A DNA stretch of 64,000 nucleotides. It comes from Amphiscolops sp. MND2022 (taxonomy: Eukaryota). Shown piece after piece: positions 4,110 to 64,000 of this stretch. Below the pieces are notes generated by a model. It was not told the origin of the DNA. It was given only the letters and a program-made list of their open reading frames with translations, and searched no databases. How positions within the stretch are numbered: position 1 is the first letter of the stretch; each line of letters opens with the position of its first letter. The stretch is from the NCBI GenBank assembly GCA_964187785.1, contig OZ076414.1:24490001-24554000 (forward strand), read 5' to 3'. The position numbers and the translations under genes are program-made.

Positions 4110-7100
4110 CTAGTTCTTTTTGTTTTTCGCTCCCTTATCTTTCGATTTTTGAGCTTGAGGCTCAACATTGGAACAGCGCGCCAATGAAATAGTTGCCTTT
4201 CCTAAGGCTGAACGCGGAGATGGTGAACTGTTGCTCGTGCCAGAATCATTACCACAGGTAACATCACCATCGTCAGGGAGACATAAACTAGGAGGAGTGA
4301 TAACGACCTTCTTGTAAGAAGCTTCAAACAAATTTTGCAAAGTACCCCGTCTAGCACTGCCCCTTTCAGGAAATTCCAGACTAAGAACTTGCGGTCCTGA
4401 AGTAAATCCTTCCCCTACCCAATAGTTGGAAAACACGGAAAATGGATCGCGGATCTTGATACAGGCTTGACACGTTAGGTACAGTGGTAAATGAAACCTG
4501 CACACTGCTCACACAAGAACGAAAGACATCCTCATCTGTTCCTAATTTGGGAACGGAATGACAAATGGTTCAGGAATTCGTACCAAAGGGGGTAAGCATA
4601 AACTGGCAAATTTGAATAGCTGATACAACTCGGATCGGCACTGCAACTCGTAGTGCGAAACTAAAAACTGAAACCAGTCGTCTGGCTGAGAAACTCCACA
4701 GTCTCTAAGTTTCGTAACAAATGAGCGATACTGGCTGACAGCTTTAGCTTTCTCACTCGCAGTAATCCAACCAGTACCCACAAAATGTCCAATAAGATTT
4801 TCGACTGCAGCGGTATACTGCTCTTCAGTACCATGCAAAATAACAGCAGAATCGAAGCAGGCTAAACCACGTACCAAACTGGACTTATCAATCTCGTGCG
4901 ACAAAATAATCCCGCAGAGGGATTTGCAGAAAGTTATAGTCTGATCAACAAACTTGCTGGGTCGCGGAAGCTTGCTAGTCGTAACAAGTCGGTGATAAGC
5001 TTCGTTAACAATAAACTCATCGGCAGTTTTAAACGGCAAATCCGTTTGAGTCAAATCAAGGCTCAGATATCGTTCCCAGTCAGAGATATTGCCAAGGACA
5101 CTATCAAGTAAAATATTCTGGAGTTGGCTATAGACAAAAACAGCATACTGGTTGTACAGCCTGAATCCAGAACCGAATTGATTGCGGGTCTCGGAGAACG
5201 CAGAATTGTCTGAAACACAAAAAATTAATTGGATCAATGTAGTTCAAGCCAAATATCATCAAAGTCAAAGACAAAATGTATTCCTACATCAATAGTAAAT
5301 TAGCAGAACGTCATTATACAGTTTTAAAACGACGCCTATACATTACTATACGGCTATCAGTAGGCGGTTATACGCCACTATACGGTCTCAAAATAATGAA
5401 TATACGTCACTGTGCGGATTCCAGCTTATGACCATACGCCACCATGCAGATTCCAATATGTGAACATGCGTCACTATGCGGATTTCAGTTTGTGACTACA
5501 CGTCACTATGCGGAATTTGGCCGGTGACTATGCGTCACTATGCGGAATCAGCCAATGAAAGTACAAGCGGACACTGATCCTGCTGATGAATTTACTGTAG
5601 TGTGCGGAATACAAGAAATGAACTTCCGTCACTATGCGCATAATGAAAGCCAATCATGCGGTATCATGCAGAAATTGTGGTTCCACATATTCGGCGTCCT
5701 ACGAGTTTTGGAGAATAATCGCAGAATTAAAAGTCAGTAAAAACAACCACACCTATGAGCTAGTACATTTTACGTAAATCATTAAGCCAAAGTGAAAACG
5801 CAAGCAACACGGAATACGAATCTGAAGAAATCCTTTGTTAAACGAAAGTAACGAGCACGTGTTGAATTATGGTTAGAAGAGCGATCAAAAGAAACCTCGG
5901 ACAATAGAACATGAGATAAAACCCAGGATATTAGTAAAATTCATACTAAAAATGGTCGAGGACGCAGCGGATTATAAATAATCTGGCCAAGTAAGCCGTA
6001 TCAAGGCAAAACCACTCGTCAAGGGTGTTGGGCTATAACAAAAAATGGAGATTTAGATCAAAGAAAACGGGTATAATATCATGAAAAGATACAATACAAA
6101 CCTCTCGCATGTGGAACCGATAGGAAGGGAGTCTGGAAACTCGGTTCCGATGGTAGAACTTTATCCTAGTGGACTGACAGGGTTTCAATCAAGATTGAGG
6201 CCTCAGTTGGGGAATATGAAAGGTCAATCACGCACTACAAAACAAATGATTTTCAAAACAAGGAACATAACAACCACACAAATTATGCGAAACGAATTGT
6301 ACCTTGTGAAGAGTCGGCAGCGACTGGAGCCAATCTCTATCCAGCGCAGTTTGCAGCTTCATCAGAATGAAATCCAAGATAGTGCGGTAATCGTGTCTCT
6401 CTAGAATTCGGGAAGTAGGAAGGGAGAGACAACGTTCCAACTCGTTAGGACCAAAGCCATTCACAGACGAAGGCCGCAATCGACCAGGTGGAGAAGATTT
6501 GAGGCAGGAATTGAGTCTGTCTGGACAATCGGTGAGACAGATGCATGACGGATGTTTATCAAAAAGACTCATAAAGGAGGCTGTAAGCCCCATCATTTTC
6601 TTCGGGACCAAAGTCCCTCGAGGACCAGTTCCAAGACAAACTTGGTAGAAAACTGTACCAGCCCAGAAATTTAGAAAGATGTGGGTTTCCAATTGGTCAC
6701 TTTGAAAAGACAAAGAACACGTTTCATTGCCAGAAATTGAAGTGACACAATGCTGCAGCAACTCGCGAAACATGTAAGTGATGATGCCCTGCAATTCAAA
6801 CCACGATTTACTTAGGAACGGACCTGACTAAACGATAAAAAAATAGAGATATACTAACAAATAAACGCTCCCGGTTCCAACTGAATGTAGACTCCTGACT
6901 GTTGCCCGGAAATAGCCGAACCATCTCATTCCACATCCCAGATAGGGAGTTGATGTTACCACCATGACGGAGGCCGTATTCGAGAATGGCAATCTGTGAG
7001 ATGACATTCTCACTCGGATTTGAAGTGGTGGAAAAATCGGGGAGCCGGTCCTGTCCAACCAAAAGACGACAAGCATCCAGTTGAGACGCTATGCGGTGGT

Positions 7101-8639
7101 CTCTTTGGCCACCTTTTTGGCTTCTTGTAAGGCACTCCCGGTGAGAGCTTTTTCGGAACGATCAAAAAAAGGCACCCCAGGTGTTTCTAGTCTTATCCGA
7201 TGCTCTTTCACCAAATGTGAGTCAGTTCTGAAGTGAGAAAGCAGTTCTAGGACGCCTCTACTCATGAGTGATAGCTCCACCCGGCATACTCGACACCACC
7301 ACTTGTATGGTGTCTTCTGGCGGTCTATTGGTCCTGTGGCAAAGAATTTAAGCACCGGGTGTTTGAGTTTGCGTATCATGTGGGTCCTCAGAGAGTACTT
7401 GGCCCTGCGCCGCTTACCACTGGAGACAGGCGCATCCTCACAACTTGATTGAGTCGTTGGCTCGTCCACTTCACGATCATCAATCCTGGCTGACGATTCC
7501 TTTGTGGTCCCTTTGCTGGGTGAAATTGGTGGATCTTCAATCACGCTGGAAGTGAAATTGCTAGTAGAGGCAGGATCTGGATCATTTAAGACGGTTTGAG
7601 GGATCCTCCCCAAGATGTTTGTAATGGCCAGTACTTCCCGTCTGGTGATGACCATTTTTGGTGGTTCAACGCTGCTCGGCCCTGGGTTCTCAGCAGTGGG
7701 CGGAAACTCTCTGGACGAGTTCTCCAGCGTTGTCTCATTGAGTGGAGTTTCAAGACCAATCATTTGAGGAGCTTCTGTAGCAAGCTCTGTTTCCTCTGTC
7801 CGGTGTAGAAAAGATGAAAATCGAGGCGATGGAGTTTGGCAGCTGTTCAAAGCTTCAGCGGCCTCAGTAACCTCTTCCATGAAAGCGTCATCAACAGCCA
7901 TTGACGACAAGTTAGGTAATAGTGGACTTACACTACAATCAGGCCTCTGCGGCGAATCTCCTTTGTTTGCCTCTGTGGCCTCTTGGATAACAAGTACTTT
8001 TGGAGACAAAGAAGTATCTAAAACATCCGCGACTATTTGTTCGATCCCGTCATCATTTTGGGTTACAGACTCCTCAATTGGCCGATCAGGTTCAGGAGGA
8101 TTTGCAACAGTTTCTGGGTTTGGAGTAGAAATGTTCCCAGAAGTAGATTGTATTAGCTGGGGGGATTCTCTGATTCAACAGCAGCAACTTCGAGTGGAAT
8201 GTATACTTTTGTAGGGGACCTAGCCGGCGATTTCCGGGTGGATCCAAAGTCAACTAAAACAGATCGATTTAATGTCGATTTGAATAAAGTTTATAATGAG
8301 CAAAACTAGTCCTGTGGAACAACTGAATCATGACGCGGAGAAAGGAAGTTTCAAAAACAGGCCGAATTAACTCAAAACCAAACCGGATGTAGAAATACTC
8401 CTGAAGAAATTCGAAAATTGATTTTCATCAAGATTAAATCAATTTTCACTGTTTAGCCTGGCCAGCTACTCAGACTAAAATTTGATTCTGATCAGAAAAA
8501 CGCAAACCTTAAATTCCAACTTAAAACAGTAATCGGATCTTACCAGGAGAAGTAGACGTTGGCGACTTGTACCCCAGTAAGCAAGTTCTTTCCGAGGAGT
8601 CTGCTGCCCTCTCGATTTTCTGCGGTTCGTGGGATCCAT
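4110..8639 (-). pseudogene. Antisense 6-exon cargo gene of element A: BED-type zinc finger plus hAT-transposase-like protein, multiply disrupted
   Basis: Exons ~8639-8544, 8253-6859, 6788-6303, 6234-6102, 6032-5951, 5209-4110 with GT..AG borders (exon 5 donor mutated to TT). WWCRVCRVELSLMSRGVLELLSHFRTDSH finger. Colinear with the B cargo; several frameshifts and stops. Confidence 0.85.
5371..5545. repeat. Phased array 1 of element A: six 15-bp cores (YRCGYCACYRTRCGG) every 32 bp, inside cargo intron 5
   Basis: Cores start at 5371, 5403, 5435, 5467, 5499 and 5531; spacers are divergent. Confidence 0.9.
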
Positions 8640-8879: not shown

Positions 8880-9984
8880 GAATTTGCGCACTAACGCAGA
8901 AAATACTCTAATCTGATTGGTCAATTAATTACCATCCATTACTGCCAGAATGGACGATTACGTAATTATCAAAAAAAGCGACCGGTCAACGATGCAGATT
9001 TCATGAATGGCCCTCATGCGGCACGTAGAGGAATTTCACCACTGCCTATGCGGCAGTATACGAAAACGACTTTATCTGTAATGCGACAGTTTGGGGAAAC
9101 TTACGACCGCTTATGCAGCAGTATACGGAAAGTCACCACTACACATACGGCAAAATGCGGAAAACTGCAACAGGATATGCGTCATAGTGTAGATAACCAA
9201 TCCCACGCTGAAAGCTATGTTCATATTTTTTAAAGGACATACACAGTTTAACTTTGATTTCTTATGTTGCTGTGGTGCTCAGTAGTCAATACTAGCTATT
9301 GAATATGCGAAAAAGATGGTCTATCAACAGAATACATTTTTATGCATTGGTGGGCCAATACAGATGTACCAAATGAAGATAAACGATAAACGAGACCTGT
9401 TGCTCTTTTTATTTTTCGAGATATAACGCACTTTTCAAGTGCGGGAGTTGAAACAAAACTTTGATGAACTGTGGATAAACGTGGCATTTCGGAAAAAGTT
9501 TTAAACTTTTAGTCCTGAAAACTTCTTTCATAAATGTAAATCTCAGTCATGTAGATCTAGATACGTATATCAATTTTCACTTCATTTCTTTATCAATGAA
9601 GTTATTAGTCATGAAATCCTTTGAAGCTAGTTTAGTTATGATTTTGTTTATATCTCAACACCAACAAGAAGTCAGAGTGAAGATGAAATTCTCCCTAATA
9701 GATGATGAAACGCCAAAGATGGAAGATTGTTTACGTTAAATTGAAGGAGAACTCGACATTTTTCGCGGCTTGGGTGATGTTTGTCACAGAAAGAGACCTT
9801 ATAGGGAAACCGGGAACACCGAAAACATGACACTCAACTTTTTCGCGGGGTTTTGTAATAAACGAAAAGAAAGAGAAAAATAATCACCATTTGGTCTTTC
9901 AACTCGCCTGAAACAGTAGCTTCATCTGAACGAACCCTACTTTCAAACTCTGCCAAGCGTCAACTATATCAATAAAACAAAAAT
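8880..9984. promoter_or_regulatory. Putative divergent internal promoter region between the antisense cargo gene and ORFX (element A)
   Basis: Head-to-head ATGs at 8639 (-) and 9985 (+). CCAAT-type GATTGG at ~8917, TTTCGCGG at 9761 and 9841. Equivalent motifs in B at 54976-56378. Confidence 0.45.
9015..9192. repeat. Phased array 2 of element A (between cargo start and ORFX)
   Basis: Units such as TATGCGGCAGTATACG start at 9015, 9047, 9080, 9112, 9144 and 9176 (32-33 bp period). Confidence 0.8.
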
Positions 9985-11042
9985 ATGCACAATCTGCAAT
10001 TCAATCTTGAAGACAGCTCTCTGCTGTCAATCCAATCGCCCAGTATCATCGATGTATCGAGCGACTCTGAAGAAGAGTTTGTTGTACAACCAAGTAGTCT
10101 GCCGAACATAGAAGAAAGATTTAGAGTCGATGGACCGAGATCGAATATGATGACAGCGTTTGTGGGCGCAACTTCTGCAACTCTGTTCGCATCGGAACCT
10201 GAAGATCCTGTAGTAACTGAAATAATCGACACTGCTGGCACCCAGATCGAGCGTCAAATGATGGATTTCATTGAAGAACACCATTTTAGTAGGGAATCAT
10301 CGCCAACTTCCTTCATAGATACAAAACTAGAAGACTGACCAATGTCCCCTTGGGATACGACCGAGCCAATGGGAATCTCAATAAATAGTTACGGAAGGCC
10401 AACAGCTGCAACTCTTCCTACACCCAGGAATACAAATCAGGCGCCGCCAGCAGTTAACAGACCTATACCTACGTTTACAACTATTTTTACAACCAACAAT
10501 CTCGATTTCCAAGCTCAACAACTAGTCGACCACGGACATCAACATACACATAGAATTTTGAATGGCATCAATACGAACGGGGTAAATCTGAATAGTGCCT
10601 TCACCCCCATTCCTAACAACTTGCCAATGTACAACAATGCTCCACTAATGATACAAATACCGCCCCATGAAGGTAGCCTTCACATCCCTCGGTTGAATGG
10701 GGACCCAACCTTGTGCCGACCCACCACTTCCCATTTCATGTAGGGCACAGCACAAACCTGCTGCTTTTGCCTCTTCAAGAGAGACAAATGTACAGACTCC
10801 TACCCACTGTCATGCCTAACGTCGCTGGTTTCTGCGATTGGTGTGGAAAATGCTACGACTTGATTGCATTGGAGACTCTGGGGGAATACCTCGTCGCTAC
10901 CGCCTACGATGGGGAGACAGTCAGGGACAGGGGTGTGAGGTCCCGCGCCTTCATAGATGGGTTCGAGGCTGCACTGTTCTCTTTTAAAGGTGCAGGACTG
11001 TCGCAGCCTCATGGGTGCTCGGGGCCTGTTGTGCAAGAATGA
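9985..11042 (+). pseudogene. ORFX of element A (unknown accessory protein), one in-frame stop and one frameshift
   Basis: ORFs 9985-10338, 10342-10743 and 10713-11042 join into a homolog of the intact 352-aa ORF at 53917-54975. Confidence 0.88.
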
Positions 11043-11400
11043 AAAAGAGAACAACTGATGTAGCCCAAAGAGACAAAACATGCTTTGATTAAACTTTACA
11101 AACTGTTTAAACCCCCCCTTTTGTGTCTTAATATTTGTTCTAGGCTGTCAATTTATGTCATGTAAATATTTGATTTTGTATTTTCTCTTCTGGATGTGCA
11201 AAAGGTACATTTATCATAAGTGCTTTCTTGATTCTTTGCCTTAATTATAACTCAAACTGATGACTCATTTTGGTAAATTGGAATTGCTTTTATGGATGAA
11301 AATTGGTATTGGGTTAACCTTTTTGATTATTAAATATGCGTCACCGTGCGAAATTGTTGAAATGAATATGCTCCATTGTGCTGTTTCTAAAAATTCATTA

Positions 11401-11665
11401 TACGCTAACATGCGGAAATTTCTTGACGCATATGCTGCATTATGCGGATTCTCACAACCGCTTATGCGGTATCATGCGAAAACATGTAATTTGTTTTGTA
11501 CGATGATATAATAATAGTTACACGTCATTGTGCGGAAAATCGCCGGCGCTTATGCGTCAACATGCGGTTTTCCGTGTTTCCAATCACACGGCGCTATACT
11601 ATTATTGCATAGTAATTACACGTTAATATGCGGAAAAATGAGTCCGCATATACGTCGCTATACAG
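11401..11665. repeat. Phased array 3 of element A (between ORFX and 3' LTR)
   Basis: TATGCGG-type ends at 11415, 11447, 11479, 11535, 11567, 11633 and 11665 (mostly 32-33 bp steps or multiples). Confidence 0.75.
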
Positions 11666-11804
11666 TTTTCCAGGGTTTTGCTGTAGTTATAGAACACTTG
11701 TTTTGCTTGTCATGTAATGTATATTTGGAACTATAAATAGGATGACGGCATATGTCGTAATTCTTTTTATATATTTTGGGGACCATGACACCCATAATTA
11801 TGGG

Positions 11805-12590
11805 TGTAACCCTTGTCATTTTTATCGAGGATTAAAGGTTTAAAACTCAATCATTCCTTGGAATAACCACCGTCAGAAGCAGTTGCTCGATGATATACAT
11901 CAAATTTTGTAAAACAGTTCTTGCAATCAACCTTCGTTCTATCTTCTCAACTTGTTTCCTCAAAGCCTTTGAATAAATTCAAATTCTTCCCCAGCAAACC
12001 CAACACATTTTTTTCACTTGAGAACAATGGGAAATAAGAGAAACAGAAGATCTAGAAGACATGAAACACCATCTCCTGACCGAAAATTGAGTGAGACACA
12101 AGTAGAAACACCAATGCAAGGTAATGAAACTTTAACTAATGTTAGTACTGTTATTCAGGAACCTTTAGGTGAAAACGAAAACAGATCTAGTCTGATAGAA
12201 CCTAGTCGGATCAGTAACAAAATCCAAGTTTGGACAGAAAACTTTGAACAAAGAACAATGACAGGATAATGAAAATTAGCGAAGAGATGGAAAACAAGTT
12301 TGACGCAATTTTGAAAGAAATAAGGACAAACAAAACAACGTCTACAAATCCTAGATCTGAAATTGACGGAATGCAAAACTCTCAACCTTCGGGATCCAAA
12401 AGTAATAGGTCTAATGGAGTTCACGCATCAAACATAGAGAACTCTGATACAAAAGATGAAGATGATCATCCCCTAAGGGCCTCACAAATGCATGAACTTA
12501 GGAATCCTGCTAGACCAATTCATCAAAACATACAAAACATAAATGAAACAATCGTTTCGATTGAGGACTCCGAGGAGGAGGATTATCACA
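11805..12590 (+). repeat. 3' LTR of element A (5' boundary uncertain, 11755-11805)
   Basis: Homology to B (52480-53241) stops at ...GAGGAGGATTATCACA; TG start aligns with the PPT/TG junction of B. Confidence 0.7.
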
Positions 12591-21350: not shown

Positions 21351-21358
21351 AAAAATTT

Positions 21359-23340: not shown

Positions 23341-23353
23341 GATTGCCCTACAA

Positions 23354-32982: not shown

Positions 32983-33029
32983 AGCCACGTCATCCTCCTC
33001 AATCACACAAAAGTGAACCCACTTACACA

Positions 33030-42597: not shown

Positions 42598-42609
42598 AAG
42601 GACGGGAGG
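42598..42609 (+). promoter_or_regulatory. Polypurine tract of element C
   Basis: AAGGACGGGAGG immediately before TGTCATG at 42610. Confidence 0.6.
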
Positions 42610-52479: not shown

Positions 52480-53241
52480 TGTGATATTCCTCCTCCTCAG
52501 AGTCTTCATTTGAAACTATTGTTTCATTTAGTTCGAATCTATTTTGACAAAATGGTTTTGCAGGGTTCCTTAGTTCGTGCATATTTGATGCTCTGATAGG
52601 GTGACTATCTTCGTTTTCAGAGTCTGAGTTGTCATTTACTGATGCGTGAACTCCTATAGACCTATCTCTGGATCACGAGGGCTGGGTGTTTTGCGTTTCA
52701 TTTGATTCAGACCTCGGATTTGTGATTGTAGATGCGTTTTTGCTAGTTTTGATTTCTTTTAAGATCGCTTCAAACTTGCTATCGATTTCTTCTCTCATTT
52801 GCCCTATTCTGTCATTGTTTCTTTTCTCCATTTCTTGTGTCCAAACTTGAATCTCATTACTGATTAGACTGGGTTCAGCCAATTGATTTTCCAAGGTGTT
52901 GGGACCTAAATTTTTTTGATCAACCAAGTTAGAATTAGTTAAAGTCATATTACCTGGGTTTGGGGTCTCTACATTCTCTTCTCTGCTTGGAGAAGGAGTT
53001 TCCAACCTTCTAGACCTTCTACTTCTCTTGTTTCCCATTTTGCTCAAGTGAAAATGTATTTCGGTTGCTGGGAAGAATTTCAATTATCTTTTGGTATCCC
53101 AAATCCAAAGAAGGATCAATATAGTCAAAAGAAAAGTTTCACAAAGGACGGAAAGGTTTACAGCAACTGTTTTACATAAGGTAGAATTGATGAATGAATG
53201 ATTTCCAACACTAGATACTCCAGAAAATTAAAAGCATGACA
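52480..53241 (-). repeat. 3' LTR of element B (alternative start ~53300), containing the gag N-terminal ORF MGNKRSRRSRR
   Basis: PPT AAAAAGGGG (53250-53242) then TGTCATG; ends GAGGAGGAATATCACA at 52480. Confidence 0.75.
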
Positions 53242-53489
53242 CCCCTTTTTATCGCAATCATCATCAGAAAAATATAAAAATAGAATTTCATCATCATGAC
53301 ATCAGGTTATATATATCTCGGCTACATGACTTTCAGGAGAATAAGCAGGACCCTAGAAGGCCTGGAAACAGCACAAAATGACGTATGAAGTTGTATTAGT
53401 GGTTGGAATTCTCAATACATTAGAATGATACAATGAATGGACAATTAAAGCGAAAAACGTACAGTAACGAGTATACGCTACTTCTCGAA

Positions 53490-53628
53490 CCGCGTAATGC
53501 CGCATAGTAAAAAGTGCATAGTGACGAGTATACATTATGCTTTAATCCGTAGGATGCCGCATAATTCAATTACGAAAAACGCATACTTGCGAGTAGTCAA
53601 CATATCTCAAACCGCATAATGACGTATA
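53490..53628. repeat. Phased array 3 of element B
   Basis: CCGCGTAATGCCGCATA (53490), CCGTAGGATGCCGCATA (53547), ACGCATACTTGCG (53579), CCGCATAATGACGTATA (53612). Confidence 0.7.
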
Positions 53629-53916
53629 GTCATTAGCACATATGATCATTTGATGATGTCATATCTCAAAAGCGATATCAAATAGAAGCCAATTAGTCAT
53701 TCAATGTGATTTTTGGGTATAAATGTCTAAGTTTTGGCTACGTATGACTTTCCTATTGCTCGCAAACAACTTCATTTATGAAAAGCATCATTAAAAAAAT
53801 TTGCATGACTATGGTAAACTAACAAATAAAGTTTTGAAAGGTGTTTGTTCAAGTTCTTCAAAGTCTATTTGCCATGATTTCTGGGTGTTGATATTGTCGC
53901 TGCTCACATTCATCTC

Positions 53917-54975
53917 TCATTGCTGCACTACGGGTCCAGTACAGCTGTATGGCTGGAACAGTCCCGCTCTTTTAAAGATGAATAGGCCAGCTTCAAAACC
54001 ATCTATAAACGCTCTAGAGCGGACTCCACGGTCCCTAACAGTTTCACCATCGTAAGCTGTAGCTGCAAGATAGTCTCCAAGGGTCTCCAACGCTATCTGG
54101 TCGTAAGTTTTGTTGCAGTACTCGCAGATGCCGGCCACATTAGGCATGACTGTTGGGAACAGCCTACAGTTGTCTCTTTCATTGATTGGCATGTATAGCA
54201 CGTTAGTACTGTGTGCTACAGTAAAAGGAAATCCAACTTGTACCATTGGGTGTATTGGGATTGGTACCCTAGGTAGTATGTCCGGAACTCCTCGTGGAGG
54301 AAGTTGAACCACTAAGGGGGTTGTGTTTGACACAGGTGCCCTCTGGATCTCATTGTAATTGGGTAGGATTAGCACACTCGCTTGCCCCTCATCTTGGCCT
54401 GCATTTTGTGTGACGTTTTGCCCATTGTTTACACTCCTGTCCCAGGGGTGGAAATCTGAGGAATTGGGATGGTGGTTTGGCGGGTAAGTTGGGATTATTT
54501 GACTCGCGGCGTCAGACTGGTGTTCGGCATTTCTTGGGGTAGGTAGGATTGCTGCAGCCGGGCGACCATAGCTATTCAACCTGATATTAATATCAGGGTT
54601 CGGATCACTTGAGGGTTCGTTTTCCAGCTCCAATTCGCTATCAATAAATGAAGGGAGCGAAGACGGAGTGGGCGGCAGATCCTCTTCAACTAAGTCCATT
54701 AGTTCCCTTTCAATTCTCGTTCCTCGGACGTCTATTGTATCTTGAGTAGGCATTTCGTTTTCTCCCATGGGGAACAATAATGCTGTGGTAGCCCCCTTAA
54801 ATGCAGTCATAGGATCTTCTCCTGTCGTATTTACCCTGAACCTGTCCAGCAATTGAGGTACATTTCCAGGCTCGACGATGAATTCGTTATCTGAATTGCT
54901 TGAGATATCGATAACGTCGGGTGACAGAGGCGAGTACAGGGTATCTTCTTCCATGGCAAATTGCAAGTTGTTCAT
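53917..54975 (-). CDS. ORFX, 352-aa accessory protein of unknown function (SIM-like N-terminus, disordered middle, conserved CxxC C-terminal domain)
   Basis: Intact ATG ORF homologous to 9985-11042, with many synonymous differences in the C-terminal domain. Confidence 0.88.
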   Translation of the reverse strand: MNNLQFAMEEDTLYSPLSPDVIDISSNSDNEFIVEPGNVPQLLDRFRVNTTGEDPMTAFKGATTALLFPMGENEMPTQDTIDVRGTRIERELMDLVEEDLPPTPSSLPSFIDSELELENEPSSDPNPDINIRLNSYGRPAAAILPTPRNAEHQSDAASQIIPTYPPNHHPNSSDFHPWDRSVNNGQNVTQNAGQDEGQASVLILPNYNEIQRAPVSNTTPLVVQLPPRGVPDILPRVPIPIHPMVQVGFPFTVAHSTNVLYMPINERDNCRLFPTVMPNVAGICEYCNKTYDQIALETLGDYLAATAYDGETVRDRGVRSRAFIDGFEAGLFIFKRAGLFQPYSCTGPVVQQ

Positions 54976-55844
54976 CTTGTGAATTCTTGAGAAATTTCAA
55001 TTTGGAATATTATTTTGCAAGTTTGAAAATCTGTGTTTTCAGGCGACTAGTTTGTGAGTTTGTGAAGACCAAATGGTGTTGGTTATTTCGCTTTCTTCCT
55101 TCCAAGGCAAGGAAAACCCGCGAAAAAATTGCTTGTCATGGTCTGATCTCCCAAATCCCCTTATAAGGGTTTCTTTCAGGCTTCTGATCATGAGACACGT
55201 GGATGATATCTCGTAAACAAATTCCTTTTTAGGTGTTCCACTTTTCTACATCACCTTATTTCCTCTCATCAGCGTCCTTCACACCGTTTCATCGGAGTTT
55301 TAAATGATACATAAACAAATTTAACCTAACATCAAAGTAGAAAGAACGAAAATGTGATTTACAAGATGTGCCAAGTTTCTGAAACTAAAATATATTTATC
55401 CGAAATTGCATGACTGGAAGCAAAGAAAATATAAATCATTAAAAAGGGGTTCATATTAGTCAAATCATGTTCTAAAAGAGCTTTAACTGCAAGAAGCGTT
55501 TTGTTTTGTTTTAGTCCCGCACTTGAAAAGTGCGTATGGTTCTGCTTTTCCATATGATTTCAATGGAACAAGTGAAATTTAGGATGAAATTACTTAAAAA
55601 GAGTTTCTTCCTGAGATATCATATTAATTTCCCAATGACACATTAAACCTCGTTCGAAAAGAGCAATAAATGCATACATTCTATGCATATTCAATAACAT
55701 CAGGAATTCATTTGTGATAATTAACGCGTAGTTTCTTCAGTTTGTTACATAATAATGATTCATTCACACAATATTAACATTGGTTCATCTCTGTGGACAC
55801 ATACAGCGAGAACCGCAGGATGGCGAGTATACGTCATTACTCAA

Positions 55845-55965
55845 TCCGTATAATGCCGCATAGTCTTCAGCTGGCAATTCCGCGTACTGCCGCATACTCA
55901 TCACTGCAATTCCGCATACTGCCGTATACTCGTCGCCAGTCGATCCGCATACTGCCGCATGCTCT
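55845..55965. repeat. Phased array 2 of element B
   Basis: TCCGYRTAMTGCCGYAT units at 55845, 55879, 55911 and 55944. Confidence 0.82.
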
Positions 55966-56378
55966 CGCTTACTAAATCATTCCAATCAGCATAGAAACGA
56001 TGAGAATGAATACACACTGCTTTTAGATGTCCTAATGAGTCAATCAATCACGCTGGCAGACGTAATTGACGTTTGGACAGCCAATCAAATTACAGCATTC
56101 TCTACGCATCTTTGCGCTTAATCATTCCATTTGCCTTTTTGCCTTCTTTGGTTACATTAACGCCACGCCTTTGTTGTATCAAATTGATTGATCATACAAA
56201 CTTTATTTTAATTTTCAAGTCACATTTATTGCTTAACGCTCTAGTCATAGTTAACAGTCCAGTTTTAGTTGTTCTTTTCCTCTCCATCCCTATCCCTTTC
56301 CAAGGAAGATTACTATTCGTCTTGCTTGTCCTACTTTAGTTGTTGGTTTAGTCTCCTTCTTTTCCTTTTTGGAAGAAA

Positions 56379-59300
56379 ATGGATCCATGTCAAGGTGAAA
56401 GCCCCGGGGAGAAACAAAGATCAAGAAAAGATCAAGCTCCGCATTTTCGTGGAGGAAGAGACTACAATCCGACGTTCTGGGCTGAGCCTGGTAAGTTCAA
56501 CAAATTCAAATTTAGATTTATTTCGATTCATTTTATTAATTGAGTTTTGCAAAGCTGGCCAGGCAGTGCAAAATGAAAATGATCTAGATGCTTATAGAAC
56601 ATTTTCCAAATTTTTTCGAAACGTTTCCGTTTCTAATTTCTAAGCAGCTTCCGTTTCTTCACTCATTTCTTAGTTCCGCGTCCGGAACTAAACAAGAATG
56701 AAACGACTTCCGCTTGAGGTATCCGTTTCCTTTAAATTTTGGTAACAGATTATTGTTTTAGTTGAACTCAGATCAAATCCAGTTACGCCGACTCGATCAC
56801 CATTAAACACTTATGCTTCACTTAAAGCAGCCCCAACAGGTTCTACTAATCCTCTTTCCAACAACGAATCCCCAGTTACTCACCCGCTTCAGATTGACGA
56901 AGGAATAAAGGTTGTGAGTGCACCTCTAAGTCCCAGTCCAGGAGTGACCATATCTGTTACTACGGATGGGGAAAAACTAGAGAGAGATCAACCTAGCTCG
57001 TCTAAGCCAATCAGTTCGGAAACTATATCAACACCGGAGAAAACTATGAATGAACCGCAGTCCAGTTTCGCAAGAGAAATGCTTGAGGAGTTTATTACCC
57101 CTACGACATCTCAAAACCCTCCACCTTGTTACAGTGGACAATTGATGGCGCCTGACCCGACCATACCAGGCATTGGAGCTTCTACCCTTATTCACCAGGT
57201 GGAAGAATCGTTTGACGCGACCCCCATGGAATTTCAGGAAGTAAGCCGAGGAATCACGATCGACCCTTGACTCACTGATGTGGGTCACCCCAACCTGAGC
57301 ATCACAAAGCAGGAGGTTTTGGCCCTAACTAACGTTTTAAGCCGAATACCACATTGTTTCCTCACAGGGGAAGAGCCTAACCCAAACCAGGCGTTGTCCG
57401 TAACAGTAGTGGACGATCTCGCCCAACCCCCTGTACTTACCACTTCCAGTCAGGAAGAGACTGCAATGCCATCTACTTCCGGGGGTATATCTCGACAAAT
57501 ATTAGCGTCGGGACCGTCGTTCCACGGGAAACGAAGGCGACCAAGATACTCTCTAACACTTGGTATGTTAAAGAAGCATCCCATACTAAAGTTCTCTGCC
57601 ACTGGCCCATTGGATGCAGAGGTCAATCCCTACAAGTGGTGGTGTAGGGTATGCAGAACTGAGCTGTCCCTAATGAGTCGGGGGAGTTTGGAGCTCTTAT
57701 CTCACTACCGTTCAGACAGTCACCTGATCAAGGAGCATCGCATCCGAATGGAGGTTCCCGGAACACCTCTATATGATAAGGAAGGTAGAGAACTCCTTGG
57801 GATTGCGCTTCAAGAAGCCAAGAAAACAGCGCGGAAGACTCACCCTATCGCGCCACCGTTAGACAGGTGCAGGCCACTTGTTGGACAAGCTACTGTTCCA
57901 GAACCCAACGCTGTAACAAGCCCTACTGAGAAGGTTCTTTTCCAAATTAGTATAATCGAACACTTGCTCAGACACGGCGGCCATATCACAAGTTTAATTG
58001 GGGTTTACGAAGGACTGTCCCAATTATCCAGCTGTAATCAATTGTCAACCCAGGATTGGTCTGACCAGAGGCTCTTTGTAAGTATCTCATACTCACTTCT
58101 TCTCAATAGGCTTCAATGGTTGAGGTTTCGTTATTATCGTATGTCTTCCATTTGTAATCAACTAAGCTTCCCATGAACAATACAGTCAACGAGGTTTTCT
58201 CATTTTGATTTGTTTTAACAGGGGATCTTGATACACATTTTCAGAGAACTGATGAATTATTGTGTCACTATGGTTACGTCTTCTGCCGTGTATTCCTTGG
58301 CATTGCAACACAAAACCACAACCTCCTACATTATTCTACTGTTTTGGTCAGGAAACGTCTTCCACCGTGTGTGTCTTGGGAGCTCGCCCCGAGGAATGTT
58401 ACTTCCACGCAAAGTTCTTAGTCTCGTTTCATCATTTCTTAGCCTGTTCGAAATTCCTCCATCTTGCCTTACGCTCATCGGAGTGGGAGAGAAATTAGAC
58501 GACTGCTTGACCTCTTCCCTACCGGGCAGTAAACGGCCTTCAATTGTTAATCCCTTTGGTCCTCGCGAGCTTGAGACCAGCCTTGCACTTCCCACTGCAC
58601 AAATAATTGAACGGCACGACTTCCGTACAATCCTAGACTTCCTCCTAATGAAGTTACGAACTGCCTTGGGTAAAGACTGGCTACAAAACTTGCCAATTCT
58701 CCACAAGGTACTTTATTTTTCATTAATTTTCATCATTGAAACACTCAATTTTCGGTATTTAATTTTAGTCTATTCTAGTGTGTACTCCGACTAGAATACT
58801 CCCTCAGTGAGGCCTCCACTATCATCGAGAACCTGTCAAACCAATGGGATCGGGTTAAAGAGCACCTGAATCAAGTTGCGCGACTACCAGCTTACCGCTT
58901 CCACATGAGAGAAGTAATCCTCATTTTATCTCATGTTATCCGTACTATACAAATTTTGGAAGTTGTATATGTATACTTGTTTCAGCCAAGTACCTTAGAC
59001 GAGTGCTTCCGTCTGGACACAGCATACCTGGCCAGACTCTTCGTCATCCGCTGTGTACTCGATCACTGTAAGTTATACAGTTGTTTAGAGCTTTTGTTAT
59101 TTTACTCCAACTCATCAGTATTCTTCTGATTTATATTCCTGAGATAACTTAGGGTAATTTGCTTTAGTGCTCATAATTTTGATATACCCGTTCAGTCTAG
59201 TTTTGCTTGGTTGTATTCAACACGTACTGGCCATTATTCTTTGCTGATTATATTTCTCAATCCTTTTGTGTTTTTGTCTCTTGTAACTAAGTTGTGTGTG

Positions 59301-60781
59301 AGCGCGTAATCGTTTCTTTCCAGTTCGTACTCGCGCATTGAACTTCCTGTGCGATTCCGCATAGTGACGCATAATCATTACGTCTCGTTCCGCACAGTGA
59401 CGTATACTCGTCACACTTCATTCCGTATAGTGACGTATAGTCTCTACACCTTGTTCCGCATAGTGACGTATAGTCGTCACACTTCATTCCGTATAGTGAC
59501 GTATAGTCCTTACACCTTGTTCCGCATAGTGACGCATAATTTCATTCCGCCATTGTGGTAGCAGTGTTCGCAGCTAACGTATATCCACACGTGTAATACT
59601 ATGCGGTCCTTTTGCAGTAAGGTTTGATGCTTTATTACCAGTTAATTAGAGTTTCTTGTTATATTTCAGATAACTCAGCATTCTCCGAAGTGCAGAAACA
59701 GGTGGAAGGTGGTTTCCGCTTATTTAATCAATATGCTGTTTTTACCTACAGCCAACTTCAAAATATCTTGCCCGACAGTGCACTGGGAGATATCTCTGAT
59801 TGGGATAATTTTTTACACTTGGACATGGATCAACCGGATTTACCGTTCAAAACTTGTGATGAGTTTGTTCTAAACGAGGATTTTCATCGTCTGGTTATGG
59901 CTAGTAGGCTGCCTCGTCCTAGCAAATTCGTGGAACAATCCATATCCTTTTGTAAAGCTTTTTGTAAGTTGTTACTTCGCCACGAAATTGCCAAATCGGA
60001 CTTGATCAGAGGTTTGTCTGCTTTTGATCCTGCTGTGGTTTTTGAGACTCCTGAAAGACATTACACTACCGTCATAGAAACGTTGTCAACACACTTTGTC
60101 ACTTCTGGATGGATTTCGGCCAGTGATAAGGTGAAGATTATCAGCCAATACCGGGCTTTCGTGACGAAAATGCGTGCCAGTGCTGTTCCAGAGTATGATG
60201 ATTGGATCCTCTATTTGTCTTCTAATTACGAGATGCAATGTCGAACCGAGTTATTTCTTCTGTTCAAATACTCATGCTTATGCCTGCCCCCGTTGGTTGG
60301 GATGCCGCCCGAAGTCATTATCCTTATTATTTCAAACTTGGAATCTGATGTTGATATGTTCCGGTCATGCCTGCGGAGCTTGCAAGCTTCCTATTTAACT
60401 GTACCCCACGTCTCGAGTTTATACCGAGATCCACGCGCTATTCCCCGAGTTTTTCGTCTCTTAGGGAGGGGAATGGACTTGCTGTCCGATAAAAAGTTCT
60501 CGGTTTGGAACTTTCTAAAGGGCAGTGGGCCAAGGAGAGCGTCTTTGTTGGGCAAATTGGAAACTGGGTATAGGAAAGCTGTTCTTCGCTCGGAGCGGCC
60601 TCCTATTTCATCCAGCAGTACTACCCCTAGTGTGAGTCGACACAGTAGCGTCAACAGCACTCCTTCTCCCGACCCTTCTCTGAGACGGGTTAATTTGGAA
60701 GTTCGCCGATGTGGCACAAGCAGTTCGGAGGATGTTTCGAAAAAGTCAAAGGCTCCAACTGGGAAAGAAAAGAAAAACTAG
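56379..60781 (+). pseudogene. Antisense 6-exon cargo gene of element B (~1080 aa; BED-type finger plus hAT-like body); one in-frame TGA at 57268
   Basis: Exons 56379-56490, 56762-58077, 58222-58707, 58779-58913, 58986-59067 and 59670-60781; phases 1,0,0,0,1 join in frame (3243 nt). NLS-like KRRRPRY; finger WWCRVCRTELSLMSRGSLELLSHYRSDSH. Confidence 0.85.
59357..59536. repeat. Phased array 1 of element B: six CCGYAYAGTGACGYA cores every 33 bp in cargo intron 5
   Basis: Cores at 59357, 59390, 59423, 59456, 59489 and 59522; spacers alternate in a 66-bp higher-order pattern. Confidence 0.92.
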
Positions 60782-60996
60782 AGGATCATCTTCATTTATA
60801 GTTTTGTTTATGTGTATTTCCTTTTTATTTTGTCTCTTTGTTGTATATTCTGTCACGTATTCACTCATTTGACAGATGGGTCATCATAAAGGCCTCCTTT
60901 ACTCCCTGGTATGTATTAAAGAGAAGGGAGGAAAAAAAGATTTTTCGTCTGAGTTTGTTTTGTTGTGTATATAAGTCAGAGTTTGAAGGTTATTCT

Positions 60997-63900
60997 TTAG
61001 TATCTATATGAGTCAGAGTAGTTTGGGTTAGGATTAGGACGTAAGTTGTATTTTTCACCACGGGTATTTATGGGTTCTTCTTGCAATGGGGTATTTTGGG
61101 AATTTTCTGGGGTTTTCTGAATATCATTGTCTGTTGAAGTATTTGTATCTTTTTGGGTTTTTTGGGTATTATTATCATTTTCTTCATTTACTTGTTGTGG
61201 AGTTTCGTCATCATGATTTTCGTGGTTTTGATCTTGTTCAGTGGTCTGTTCCACTGGGCTCCCCCCACTATTTTTTGAAATTTCGAGGGAGGGAGGGTGG
61301 TTATTTTCGGGTGATGTAATGGGTAGGTATTCAATATCTTCGGTATTTTGTGAGTACTCTGGAGAGTTGTCCTCAAACGGATTAGGGCCGAAATTTGTAT
61401 TCCAAGATTGAGCATATAGATCATCTTGCGTTATCGGCAGTTGGTCATCTTTCTGCCAATCAGTTTCTCGTACGAAAATGTTTGCGAGAGGGGCTTGGGG
61501 GGTAAACTTCCTCAAGCGAATTCGATGCAGAAGTTGCGTCTTGTTAGTTCCTAAGCGTCTAACTATGTAGTTATTGTTAGGAAGGACTTTCTCAACTTTA
61601 CATGGGCCTTGCCATCTAAATTCTCGAAAAGGTATCTTTGTTGCCTGGGTATCCGCCTTCGGGTTTAGGACGTAACAATAATCCGTTGTTTCAAGTGGTG
61701 ATGCCTTTGCTTTCCTATCATAATATGCTTTGTATTTGAGATAGGATTGCATTATGTTCTTTTTGGTTTGGTCAAGCAGTATTTTCATTCTTCTTTGTAC
61801 TTCCTCTGCTACATCTGTATGTGGTAGGTATTTTGGGTTGTATCCAAGCTTGTAATCGAGTATGTTATGGGGTATTCGCCCACGAAATACTCGTGAAGGC
61901 TCACAACCCAGTGTTGCATGGTAAGTAGTGTTGTGGTTTAAGACTGCTAGCGGGAGAAACCTATGCCAATTGTTTCGAAATTCCTCGGTGGCAGCTTTAA
62001 GATGCGTTTTCACTGATGCATGAGTTCTCTCTAGGATTCCATTGGTTTGAGCGTGTTTCATCGTTGCATGCTTGAGCTCAATTCCTAGAACTGCGGCTAC
62101 TTCATGTGTGACTTGGGCATTGAATTGTGTGCCCAAATCCGTAATTATTGTAGTTGGTAGATATGTGTGTTTGCAGAGGATATCCATTATTACTCGGGCT
62201 ACAGCAGAAGCTGTAATGCGTGTTACTGGGTATGCAAACAAATACCTTGAAAAAACGTCTATCGCTGTGATTATGTGATCATAGCTTCCACTTGGAGGGA
62301 GATTGGGTAGGATGTCCATTTGAAGAATGTCTTCTGGACCAAGGTCCCATTCTGGACAGTTGAGAAGTTCCGTTCTGAGAAGATCATTGTTGATCCGTTT
62401 GGTTTGTATGCAAATTTGGCAATTGGTGACCCATTTTTTGACGTATTTAGCAATACATGGGTAATAGTAATTTTGTCGGGCTTCTTGAATCATCTTCGTA
62501 ATACCTGGATGGTTTGAGTTGTGACCATGTAGGGATTGAAGAAATTCTTCTAGAAGTTGAGCCGGAAGTAGTATCTGGTAATGGGAAGTGGTTCCCGTGT
62601 CTGTATAGTACCTGCGGGTGAGAACTTCTTGTTTGATTTCAATTCTAGCGATATTTTGAAGATAATGGTGGTATCTATAGTCAGATGCCAACTCGTGTTC
62701 ATCAAAAGGATGTCCTTCTATTTTTGCTCGTAAATTTCTGAGTACAATATCGTTGTTTTGTTCTAAACGAATCTTCGCATTGTCTCGGAAGTGACCTTCC
62801 GAACAAGTCTTTAAACCAGAAGTAGGTTTATGGAATTGTTGGAGTTCGGTTATGTTATTTTCTGGTTCATTGTGTGTCTCGTTTTGAGCTTGGTCTCGGA
62901 TGTTCTGCTTCTCTTGCCATAATTGGTTTTCATCTAGTTCATCATCGGGGAGGATGTAAATCTGCTCTTCTTCTACGATCCCTGATGATTGTATGTTGAC
63001 TTCAATTGCTTTGGTGTGTATGTCATTTCGAATGGTCAGTTCAAGTTTTTCAACTGGATTGACTTCGGTGCGTGAGAGGAAGTCAGCTGCAGTGTTCATT
63101 GATCCCGCAACGTGGGCGATTACAAAATTATATTGTAAAACATAATCGCATGCATTCCAAAGTGCCGGTGGGATAAGTTTTGCTTGAAAAAATCGGAATA
63201 CTGATCTATTATCGGTGAACACAATTACAGGGAATGTGCTTCCCCACATGAGGTGTCCAAATTCAACAAAGGCAAAATATATGGAAAGGAATTCCTTGGC
63301 ATATATAGACATTTTTGTTTGTGTCGGGTTGAAAGTTTTGGAACCAAATGCTATGGGAGCGTATGTTTTGCGTTTTGATTGCAATTTTTGGTTCGGGTCG
63401 TCTTCTATCATAATGGCATATCCCGCAGCAGTAAAGCTGGCATCAGAAATGATTATGAGCTGTTTGTCTTTGAGGGGTTGTTTCAATGCTAATTGGCATG
63501 AATTTTCGAGGAGTTTATTGAGGTTGGTGAAATCCTCTACTAAGTTTGTTGGCACATAGAATTTGGATGTTTCCTTGAGAAGTTTAAAGAACGGAGACAG
63601 CCGTTCTGAGAGTCGTGGAATGTAGTTGCGATAGTAGTTTAGGAAACCTATATATCGCTGGAGGGCTTTTTTGGATTTAGGAAATCTAAGTTTAGACAGA
63701 AAGTTTTTGACTTTTTCTGCTTGCGGGGCGACTCCTTCAGGTGTGATTGTGCGTCCCAAGAAGTCAACTTGTTTGACGCCAAAGTGGCATTTGGACATCG
63801 TAAGTTTAAGGCCAGCATTTCTGATGCATCCGAACACTGTTCTGATGTTGGCGCATAGTTGCTGGGCATTATTTGCAGCGATGCCAATGTCATCCACGTA

Positions 63901-64000
63901 TTGGGCGCACTGGTCTGCTTTGATTGCTTTATCTAGGTACTCTCTCATGAAACTAGAAAATGCTGAGAGAGATCGGCTTAGGCCTTGCGCTAGTCGTCTA
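60997..64000 (-). CDS. pol: Gypsy pol, open from RT palm through RNase H and integrase (N-terminus outside window)
   Basis: Uninterrupted ~1000 codons: LAQGLSRS, QYVDD, RNase H SDASF..KEF..FTDN, HHCC, D-D-E core, WQGPC and terminal KYNLRPNPNPNYSDSYRY. Confidence 0.97.
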   Translation of the reverse strand, partial: RRLAQGLSRSLSAFSSFMREYLDKAIKADQCAQYVDDIGIAANNAQQLCANIRTVFGCIRNAGLKLTMSKCHFGVKQVDFLGRTITPEGVAPQAEKVKNFLSKLRFPKSKKALQRYIGFLNYYRNYIPRLSERLSPFFKLLKETSKFYVPTNLVEDFTNLNKLLENSCQLALKQPLKDKQLIIISDASFTAAGYAIMIEDDPNQKLQSKRKTYAPIAFGSKTFNPTQTKMSIYAKEFLSIYFAFVEFGHLMWGSTFPVIVFTDNRSVFRFFQAKLIPPALWNACDYVLQYNFVIAHVAGSMNTAADFLSRTEVNPVEKLELTIRNDIHTKAIEVNIQSSGIVEEEQIYILPDDELDENQLWQEKQNIRDQAQNETHNEPENNITELQQFHKPTSGLKTCSEGHFRDNAKIRLEQNNDIVLRNLRAKIEGHPFDEHELASDYRYHHYLQNIARIEIKQEVLTRRYYTDTGTTSHYQILLPAQLLEEFLQSLHGHNSNHPGITKMIQEARQNYYYPCIAKYVKKWVTNCQICIQTKRINNDLLRTELLNCPEWDLGPEDILQMDILPNLPPSGSYDHIITAIDVFSRYLFAYPVTRITASAVARVIMDILCKHTYLPTTIITDLGTQFNAQVTHEVAAVLGIELKHATMKHAQTNGILERTHASVKTHLKAATEEFRNNWHRFLPLAVLNHNTTYHATLGCEPSRVFRGRIPHNILDYKLGYNPKYLPHTDVAEEVQRRMKILLDQTKKNIMQSYLKYKAYYDRKAKASPLETTDYCYVLNPKADTQATKIPFREFRWQGPCKVEKVLPNNNYIVRRLGTNKTQLLHRIRLRKFTPQAPLANIFVRETDWQKDDQLPITQDDLYAQSWNTNFGPNPFEDNSPEYSQNTEDIEYLPITSPENNHPPSLEISKNSGGSPVEQTTEQDQNHENHDDETPQQVNEENDNNTQKTQKDTNTSTDNDIQKTPENSQNTPLQEEPINTRGEKYNLRPNPNPNYSDSYRY

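Follow-up and report, generated by a model that had tools for sequence, protein, structure and literature searches.

Ty3/Gypsy retrotransposons with an antisense transposase-like gene, an accessory sense gene and phased motif arrays: a candidate self-regulatory module

What might be the role of a block of genes and short repeats that sits between pol and the 3′ long terminal repeat (LTR) of an animal retrotransposon? The question is raised by a stretch of 64,000 nucleotides from Amphiscolops sp. MND2022 (assembly GCA_964187785.1, contig OZ076414.1, positions 24,490,001 to 24,554,000; hereafter the window), in which self-comparison revealed two related elements in opposite orientation, A on the plus strand from position 1 and B on the minus strand from position 64000. 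Downstream of pol both elements carry, in the same order, a gene on the opposite strand (the cargo gene), a spacer and a sense open reading frame (ORF) named ORFX, together with three motif arrays. An earlier interpretation made from the letters alone (the sequence-only reading) took this block for a possible anti-silencing or autoregulatory system. The present analysis leads us to a related proposal, to which we assign a probability of roughly 0.45: a transposase-like protein encoded by the cargo gene would bind the arrays and so regulate the element's own LTR and an internal promoter, with ORFX as a cofactor.

The elements and the inheritance of their shared block

A and B are the 3′ halves of Ty3/Gypsy elements of ~16 kb and belong to a large, old clade of animal Ty3/Gypsy retrotransposons. 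When the frames of the window were searched against Pfam, pol matched RVT_1, RT_RNaseH, Integrase_H2C2 and rve (reverse transcriptase, RNase H and integrase), and every other frame of A and B gave no match. For a wider view we fetched the DNA around several ORFX homologues and the loci of the most distant homologues of cargo exon 5 (23-28% identity, from other samples). One of these relatives, L007, which lies on the same contig as the relative L001, is a complete element, 16,029 bp in length. It is bounded by two 1488-bp LTRs, which are 99.46% identical and end in TGTT..CACA, and the element is flanked by a 5-bp target duplication (GAGGG). The sequence TGGTGACAGG (TGG...) follows the 5′ LTR and the purine tract AAAAGAGCGGGA stands ahead of the 3′ LTR; the 2187-amino acid (aa) gag-pol frame in between matches Ty3_capsid, zf-CCHC, gag-asp_proteas, RVT_1, RT_RNaseH, Integrase_H2C2 and rve. 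The domain order of Ty3/Gypsy is thus present, as are the LTR ends, target duplication, primer-binding site and purine tract, the latter set in L007, and the earlier assignment of both window elements to Gypsy is borne out.

The segments of A and B that belong to the retrotransposon proper are the following.

82..3856 (+): pol of A, protease to integrase, split over three frames
~11001..12590 (+): 3′ LTR of A, with array 3 (11335-11665) and a gag-start ORF (12018 onward)
60997..63948 (-): pol of B (end of reverse transcriptase, RNase H, integrase), identified by Pfam; the open frame exits the window end
52480..53960 (-): 3′ LTR of B, TGTT...CACA, holding array 3 and the gag start (ORF 53083-52673)

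At the nucleotide level A and B are 77% identical in pol (1699-3927 vs 63240-60997) and 74-79% identical over ~600 bp at the far end of the LTR (11976-12590 vs 53085-52480). The ~8 kb separating pol and the LTR end do not align as DNA and are collinear as protein in tblastx, which confirms the earlier description of a shared ~8-kb block with parts in the same order and spacers that barely align. The further claim that every part had been kept despite the divergence holds insofar as all parts are present in both elements, but neither copy is intact. In A, pol and cargo exons 1 and 5 contain frameshifts or stops, the exon-4 donor is mutated, and ORFX has both a stop and a frameshift; B has an in-frame stop in cargo exon 1 at 57271-57273.

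The window contains 3′ LTRs only, with ends matching those of L007. Their limits were set by mapping the L007 LTR onto A and B, giving LTRs of ~1.5 kb, and the LTR of B is 95% identical to that of L007 over 1355 bp. By these limits (B 53960, A ~11001) array 3 lies within the U3 region of the LTR, and ORFX terminates inside the LTR, which starts 44 bp ahead of the ORFX stop. The sequence-only reading had placed three arrays at equivalent positions ahead of the 3′ LTR; the positions are indeed equivalent, but the third is in U3. The gag-pol frame of L007 opens inside its 5′ LTR. It starts ~1 kb into the LTR, and each LTR encodes about the first 188 Gag residues (MGNKR...), at 52673-53083 (-) and 12018-12610 (+) in the window and at 3206-3770 in L007 (reverse-complement coordinates). 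The MGNKR frames of the window are therefore LTR copies of the gag start, which replaces the earlier reading of this ORF; a separate gene and the start of a neighbouring element were both rejected on this ground. A gag start within the LTR is unusual among LTR elements, and would put the primer-binding site within coding sequence.

The order pol, antisense cargo gene, spacer, ORFX and LTR was found at all loci with enough flanking sequence (A, B, L001/L007, L002, L003 and L010). The same order and orientation recur in L013 and, partially, in L004, and pol and cargo alone were seen in L008 and L009. In L008, L009 and L013, whose pol is 57-69%, 49% and 47-51% identical to that of B, respectively, the cargo gene is again antisense and directly follows the integrase. 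L013 is also a complete element (16.3 kb, with LTRs of 2299 bp that are 98.4% identical). Its sense ORF, in a copy with stops, has the C-terminal domain of ORFX (hhalign probability 98.7%) and two stretches, IYLSSDKSD and LISDDEDDD, that resemble a SUMO-interacting motif (SIM). Among about a dozen readable contexts no cargo or ORFX copy was found outside an LTR element. The sequence-only reading had considered that the block might occur mostly outside such elements; instead, all readable homologues adjoin Gypsy pol, with place and orientation unchanged. The block is inherited as part of the element and does not represent a single captured host locus.

The two complete relatives are set in satellite DNA. 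L007 sits in a 40-bp-unit satellite (1684-2282 and 18313-21122, reverse-complement coordinates) and L013 among CAGCGCTG-type 10-bp repeats (2554-3076 and 19590-20119); the latter lie outside the LTRs, and we therefore rejected them as part of the element and regard them as flanking satellite. Chance, assembly context or target preference could account for this setting. In L006, a short-read metagenome contig, positions 588-4132 contain ORFX, then an LTR, then a full gag (63% identical over 529 aa), a layout that is probably either an assembly path via the shared LTR or a tandem pair of elements.

The antisense gene and its transposase-like product

The cargo gene runs on the opposite strand from pol and comprises five or more coding exons separated by canonical GT-AG introns; its splice sites are conserved in A, B, L001, L002 and L003. 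Its parts are listed here for B, with the gene of A below.

56746..58077 (+): exon 1 of B; disordered N-terminus, KRRRPRY patch, CX2CX16HX5H finger from 57643, helical region; alignment of 25 homologues
58222..58707 (+): exon 2 of B; N-terminal half of the RNase H-like fold; 121 homologous clusters
58779..58913 (+): exon 3 of B, 45 aa
58986..59067 (+): exon 4 of B, 82 nt, ending in phase 1
59068-59669 (+): last cargo intron of B, holding array 1
59670..60781 (+): exon 5 of B; all-alpha domain, then a Ser-rich basic tail; stop 60779-60781; 226 representative homologues
4110..8253 (-): cargo gene of A; exon 1 8253-6859, exon 2 6788-6303, exon 3 6234-6102, exon 4 6032-5951, exon 5 5209-4110; the exon-4 donor reads TT

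The donor of exon 1 is conserved (GTAAGT directly after ...RLF). Exon 2 is preceded by a pyrimidine tract and CAG and ends in ...LHK followed by GT, and the small exons 3 and 4 combine third-codon-position variation with conserved AG/GT borders in five copies. Exon 5 is joined in phase 1, the junction reading ..DH-Y-NSAFSE in A and B. The earlier notion of an antisense spliced zinc-finger gene gains from the conserved GT-AG introns, but its exon set was incomplete, with two small exons missed; we rejected a gene model joining exon 2 straight to the last exon because of these two additional conserved exons and the phase-1 junction. A conserved acceptor 5′ of exon 1 points to at least one further 5′ exon, presumably with the start codon; in B, neither the exon 1 acceptor nor an upstream ATG exon was located. 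A poly(A) signal follows the cargo stop in the short gap ahead of the pol end (ATTAAA at 60915 in B). In L008, exons 1 and 2 are fused and intron 1 is absent. Antisense introns cannot be removed from sense genomic RNA and are hence heritable via reverse transcription, so that the introns of this antisense gene would survive retrotransposition.

The predicted product, ~1000 aa long, starts with a disordered N-terminus and a basic patch; a CCHH finger, an RNase H-like domain and an all-alpha C-terminal domain follow. Within exon 1 the N-terminus is variable and rich in proline and serine, the basic patch reads KRRRP(K/R)Y, and a strongly conserved stretch, HPVLKFSATGP...YKWWCRVC-x16-H-x5-H, includes the finger. 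Searches by sequence gave the protein no name. Pfam at permissive thresholds returned none for all exons of A and B, 25 exon-1 homologues and distant lineages; phmmer and profile searches of PDB sequences found no match; and phmmer against 1.84 billion representatives identified cargo relatives only as unnamed ORF fragments of at most 420 aa.

We therefore turned to predicted folds. The AlphaFold2 model of exon 5 is all-alpha, with a predicted local distance difference test (pLDDT) score >90 over about residues 15-205. For the finger and exon 2, a model was built on a database protein whose frame continues through intron 1 (P0260:298-690). It contains a beta-beta-alpha finger (pLDDT ~75-80) and, in exon 2, a b1-b2-b3-a1-b4-a2 RNase H-like unit (pLDDT 72-83). 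Foldseek against the PDB ranked the Hermes hAT transposase first for this model (8edg_A, E 2.9e-4, probability 0.87, 422 aligned columns). Hermes chains of 8edg, 4d1q, 8sjd, 2bw3 and 6dww took 7 of the 12 top places, and five Hermes entries (nine chains) were among the listed top 50 matches.

A number of observations limit how far this match points to a hAT origin. The mean pLDDT of the finger and exon 2 model is 59, the TM-scores of the Hermes match are ~0.2, and other, generic RNase H-like folds follow closely behind Hermes in the list. Exon 5 had no match in BFVD and no PDB match with E <1. The Pfam zf-BED model gave no match at E up to 1-10 in about 35 family members, and for the hAT dimerisation domain there was no Pfam match and the exon-5 profile search of PDB sequences came back empty. 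The CX2CX16HX5H finger with its ..RG-x-x-E-L-x-x-H.. signature and beta-beta-alpha model is compatible with a BED finger and undiagnostic. No hAT-type terminal inverted repeats or 8-bp duplications were noticed around the cargo gene, for which no dedicated inverted-repeat search was made; in all copies the gene lies between pol and the spacer. The presumed catalytic positions, placed by model topology and not by superposition, are unconserved: 20 of 28 sequences have Q at the end of b1, and the residue after b4 is D in 12, G in 10 and N in 5. Of the earlier label 'hAT-derived' there remains Hermes as the best fold match at moderate model quality; no sequence or profile link to hAT was found in Pfam or the PDB. 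The models point, at a moderate level of evidence from the fold, to a transposase-like DNA-binding protein that lost catalysis, and hAT membership is not established.

Could the protein still act as a nuclease or recombinase in some lineages, giving the element a second, DNA-level route to move or to resolve tandem or nested copies? L008 has acidic residues, E-D, where strand b1 ends, and in some members of the family D occupies both of the presumed catalytic positions. In the window family, however, these positions vary and mostly lack acidic residues. Neither hAT-type ends nor 8-bp duplications were noticed, and L007 is bounded by a normal 5-bp duplication of the integrase type. We consider retained catalysis very improbable, and keep to a protein that would bind DNA without cutting it.

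We then compared substitution rates. Synonymous sites are saturated between subfamilies for pol, cargo and ORFX alike, and the ratio of nonsynonymous to synonymous divergence (dN/dS) is not calculable at this distance, as dS is saturated. The dN values between subfamilies are 0.06-0.08 for pol, 0.12-0.46 for cargo and 0.30-0.43 for ORFX. Set against the saturated dS, these values place cargo and ORFX under purifying selection, though both change several-fold faster than pol. For ORFX of B and L001, dN is 0.020 and dS 0.173, a ratio of 0.12. The same two elements are 98% identical in pol and 95-96% in ORFX and LTR, but only ~59% in the cargo protein, with breakpoints at the pol stop (B 60973) and in the spacer (B 56181). 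The cargo cassette, array 1 included, has been swapped between subfamilies as a unit.

These data bear on the idea that the block is a passive passenger, being a hAT transposon or host gene once inserted into a Gypsy element, or else a chance set of ORFs and repeats. A passenger would fit the transposase-like fold, the short repeated motifs reminiscent of hAT subterminal repeats (PMC10368747) and the disabling mutations in both window copies. Yet lineages with pol identities of 47-98%, from at least four samples, have retained the module; L001, L003 and L010 still have unbroken long frames and splice sites; and dN falls far short of the saturated dS. Moreover, no terminal inverted repeats were noticed beside the gene (no dedicated search), one array is in the LTR and the cassette has moved between subfamilies as a unit. 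A passenger is thus scarcely credible, and a function of the module for the element is the reading that we pursue.

Motif arrays, ORFX and the proposed circuit

The arrays are candidate targets of the cargo protein. The 17-mer CCGCATAGTGACGTATA, allowing up to 3 mismatches, matches the window 18 times, each time within A or B, whereas shuffles give an expectation of 0.06. The spacing of the CGYATA half-sites alternates between 10 and 22-24 bp, and Tandem Repeats Finder gives a unit of 32-33 bp; by this spacing the two half-sites of a pair lie one helical turn apart, with pairs recurring every three turns. The arrays occupy three places in each element.

5337..5546: array 1 of A, last cargo intron
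~9047..9176: array 2 of A, spacer, partly decayed
11335..11665: array 3 of A, LTR U3
59355..59538: array 1 of B, last cargo intron (59068-59669); 5.6 units of 33 bp, Tandem Repeats Finder score 221-286, spacings 10/23 bp
55845..55964: array 2 of B, spacer between the divergent cargo gene and ORFX; Tandem Repeats Finder period 32, 3.6 copies, spacings 10/22-24 bp
53491..53628: array 3 of B, LTR U3, ~330-470 bp into the LTR

Taken over both elements, array 3 lies ~330-670 bp into the LTR. Equivalents of array 1 are present in the same intron of L001, L003, L010, L008 and L009, and equivalents of array 2 in A, L001, L003 and L010. We measured site conservation over 52 units from five copies and three locations, anchored on paired half-sites. 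Positions not fixed by the anchoring are still conserved at 0.8-1.9 bits (G-A before half-site 1, C-A between the half-sites and G-A after half-site 2), whereas the ~12-bp linkers are near 0.1-0.5 bits. The composite is a bipartite site of ~20 bp, on the sense strand GAnTATRCGkCAnTATGCGGA. The motif is constrained while the linkers drift, which makes it a candidate binding site. We rejected structured RNA as an explanation of the arrays, array 1 having folding z-scores of -0.7 and -0.9 on the two strands and the window no Rfam match.

The decayed array of L002 is eroded but recognisable, with several CG-to-CA changes. The window as a whole has an observed/expected CpG ratio of 0.89. The ratio reaches 1.02 in the non-element stretch 13000-30000 and lies at 0.67-0.99 in parts of the elements, which are only mildly CpG-depleted relative to their surroundings.

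More distant relatives carry other motifs. The arrays of L008 have 55-56-bp units of the form GTGCC..GTGCC..GGCAC..GGCAC and those of L009 61-72-bp units of the form TTGTCC..GTGTCCCAGGACAC..GGACAA, with GTGTCC/GGACAC as the L009 motif. Each of these two loci has an array in the intron preceding the last cargo exon and a further array at some other place. In L008 the second GTGCC/GGCAC array (2468-2864, reverse-complement coordinates) stands between a gag-like ORF and the reverse transcriptase, in the expected place of the protease, on a contig of 11.7 kb. Finger sequences also vary among L008, L009, L013 and the window family. The sequence-only reading had proposed to look for co-occurrence of cargo, ORFX and arrays, and in the relatives that we read they do co-occur, with L013 as the case discussed below.

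An alternative is that the arrays are enhancers read by host transcription factors and that the cargo protein is otherwise employed, for example in tethering or import of the cDNA or in steering integration. Several findings lean this way and against binding by the cargo protein. The array 1 units of A and B contain a TGACG half-site like that of a cAMP response element (CRE), so that host bZIP factors could bind array 1, and LTR elements commonly have tandem enhancer repeats in U3. L013 retains cargo and ORFX with no clear internal arrays. The fingers of L008 and L009 are fairly similar yet their motifs are unlike, and the link between finger and motif spans three lineages only. On the other side, TGACG is not conserved in L001, and the core common to the copies is TATGCGG, which to our knowledge matches no host factor site. 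One element-specific motif recurs at three places, including the intron of the cargo gene, and between lineages the motif is replaced wholesale while the array position stays constant. On balance we regard host enhancers as somewhat unlikely and binding by the element's own cargo protein as the better account of the arrays.

We next considered ORFX and the sequence in front of it, which lie as follows.

53917..54975 (-): ORFX of B, an intact 352-aa frame; 91 homologous clusters; last 44 bp in the LTR
9985..11045 (+): ORFX of A; in-frame stop 10339-10341, frameshift near 10713-10743
55075..55205 (-, B) and ~9785-9915 (A): non-coding blocks kept 100-230 bp ahead of the ORFX start codon (ATG)

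An alignment of 24 ORFX homologues, down to 34% identity, has the N-terminal block SPDVIDISS-x-S-x-x-EF, another acidic block (FIDSEFEE), a middle part that evolves fast and, at the C-terminus, a conserved domain of ~95 aa with CxxC. The SIM-like VIDISS-x-S-x-x-EF is at residues 21-32 of B, and S25 and S28 are invariant in the 24 sequences; the earlier description of ORFX as SIM-bearing is upheld as a conserved pattern match. ORFX has no predicted transmembrane segment (highest 19-residue Kyte-Doolittle mean 1.02) and no relatives in Pfam or the PDB, and we therefore rejected env as its identity.

Upstream of ORFX, an alignment by MAFFT showed five blocks kept in six copies whose spacers are otherwise barely alignable: TTGTTTAC, CC(A/T)TATA(A/T)GG, CATGAC, TTTTYCGCGGG and CACCATnTGGTCT. 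The second is CArG/TATA-like and the fourth E2F-like, and we infer from them a candidate internal promoter. The phased arrays would then be found at the LTR U3, in a candidate bidirectional internal promoter region and in the cargo gene's own intron.

In the circuit that we favour, the cargo protein would bind the arrays cooperatively as a multimer, in the manner of hAT transposases on subterminal repeats, and the bound protein would serve as a sequence-specific regulator of the LTR promoter and the internal promoter. ORFX would be a cofactor that ties the complex to SUMO-dependent chromatin machinery. As to the direction of regulation we can offer a guess: the effect may be activation or protection from silencing, which we take to be likelier than repression, weakly, because the family is abundant and one copy has near-identical LTRs. 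A methylation-based mechanism of the type described for VANC, in which DNA methylation is removed, is not favoured, as CpG is hardly depleted (observed/expected 0.89), and this weakens an anti-silencing role that would work through methylation. A fuller version of the story, which we hold only tentatively and think possible rather than probable, is that a Gypsy clade domesticated a catalytically dead transposase of the hAT type, that protein and phased arrays co-evolve by lineage, and that together with a SUMO-interacting partner they activate or shield the element.

The same evidence would also suit a protein that binds the arrays as a repressor, limiting copy number or keeping the element quiet. 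Transposase-derived repressors are known, such as the KP protein of the P element, and a SIM-bearing partner could recruit SUMO-dependent silencing. Hundreds of homologous clusters and a very young copy (99.5% LTR identity) suit a pro-replicative factor better, although they are not decisive; repression seems rather improbable to us, and activation or shielding by the cargo protein and ORFX remains our working proposal.

The countering or tuning of host silencing by transposable elements is well documented in plants (VANC, TnpA) and poorly in animals. If the proposal is true, a retrotransposon has reused the DNA recognition of a cut-and-paste transposase as a private transcription factor, and the module would be an animal retroelement counterpart of VANC, TnpA and the Tas circuit of foamy viruses. 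As the lineages bear different motifs, in effect natural 'swap' variants, co-evolution of protein and site is directly testable. The architecture is of interest in itself, since it combines cassette exchange and a gag start in the LTR with an antisense gene of several exons that survives reverse transcription. Recognising it also matters for annotation, since gene finders otherwise call the cargo exons host genes or orphan ORFs; compare the hundreds of unnamed ORF fragments in public protein collections.

Neighbouring features and comparison with known systems

Apart from A and B, the window contains a second, older LTR element at 30670-43917 (+), with 1.15-kb LTRs that are 86.5% identical (30670-31816 and 42770-43917). 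Its pol weakly resembles that of A (1309-1442 vs 34507-34640); it has no CCGCATA arrays, and those of its ORFs that were tested had no Pfam match. At 45822-47417 (-), a GC-rich stretch (53%) encodes a 531-aa, ATG-initiated ORF with 11 LDL-receptor class A repeats (Pfam E 3.8e-88). This ORF, which may be a host exon or belong to a different repeat, is the one feature of the window's sequence that suggests an animal host. A 344-bp direct repeat of 93.6% identity (50389-50732 and 52146-52485) abuts the outer end of the B LTR with its second copy (~6 bp overlap), and, given this adjoining repeat, B may have inserted into another repeat.

Among retroelements, the foamy-virus protein Tas (Bel1) is a regulator that acts on the LTR U3 and on an internal promoter driving accessory genes. 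Antisense coding also occurs in retroelements, as in the deltaretroviruses (HBZ). The elements described here resemble the Tas system in having candidate target sites in the LTR U3 and at an internal promoter of accessory genes, with function being inferred in our case; they differ in that Tas is a sense-strand product, lacks introns of its own and has no homology to cargo. Antisense retroviral genes are discussed in PMC11963269.

Animal LTR elements that gained genes downstream of pol offer a second comparison. Invertebrate LTR elements with extra ORFs (ORF3) are known, for example, from bdelloid rotifers (PMC5408684), and the Tor elements of Oikopleura have an internal env promoter (PMC4402516). 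Gene gain downstream of pol, module exchange and internal promoters are thus shared with the present clade. The rotifer and Tor genes, however, encode sense-strand env-like proteins or enzymes (GDSL esterase, DEDDy exonuclease), and none is a spliced antisense transposase-like gene with arrays.

Hermes binds subterminal repeats via multiple BED domains (PMC10368747). The cargo protein resembles hAT transposases such as Hermes (8edg, 4d1q, 2bw3) in an N-terminal CCHH finger and, as modelled at moderate quality, in the RNase H-like domain and extensive helical part that follow; it differs in having no Pfam match to zf-BED or the hAT dimerisation domain, in its unconserved presumed catalytic residues and in being encoded within a retroelement. 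Transposases have been argued to be intrinsically sequence-specific transcriptional regulators whose catalytically dead derivatives recur (preprint 10.64898/2026.08.24.746577).

The closest analogues of the module are the antisense ORFs of plant Retand elements and VANC. VANC of the Arabidopsis VANDAL elements, which are Mutator-like, binds motifs that form tandem repeats and vary between related transposable elements (Hosaka 2017, PMC5735166). Here, too, a transposable element encodes an accessory protein and has tandem motifs in its own non-coding DNA that differ between related elements: there are three arrays per element, with one motif throughout the window family and other motifs in its place in L008 and L009. 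In contrast, VANC belongs to a DNA transposon and removes DNA methylation, whereas we deal with a retrotransposon with weak CpG depletion and candidate binding only, and no sequence relationship between the two was found.

The sequence-only reading knew of no description of such a module, which is too strong in view of Retand. In these plant Gypsy elements, the region from pol to the 3′ LTR contains antisense ORFs with a TRP28 domain and family-specific tandem arrays, of unknown function and with a regulatory role proposed (Vicient 2025, PMC11963269). In the literature searched, the coverage of which was incomplete, we found no description of an animal LTR element in which a spliced, transposase-like antisense gene is accompanied by cognate arrays. 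Retand is the nearest described architecture. It shares with the present elements a long region between pol and the 3′ LTR, an antisense ORF predicted to bind DNA and family-specific tandem arrays in that region; what sets A, B and their relatives apart is that they are animal elements with at least five coding exons in the antisense gene, a transposase-like fold, an extra sense gene, and one motif placed at three defined sites that include the LTR U3.

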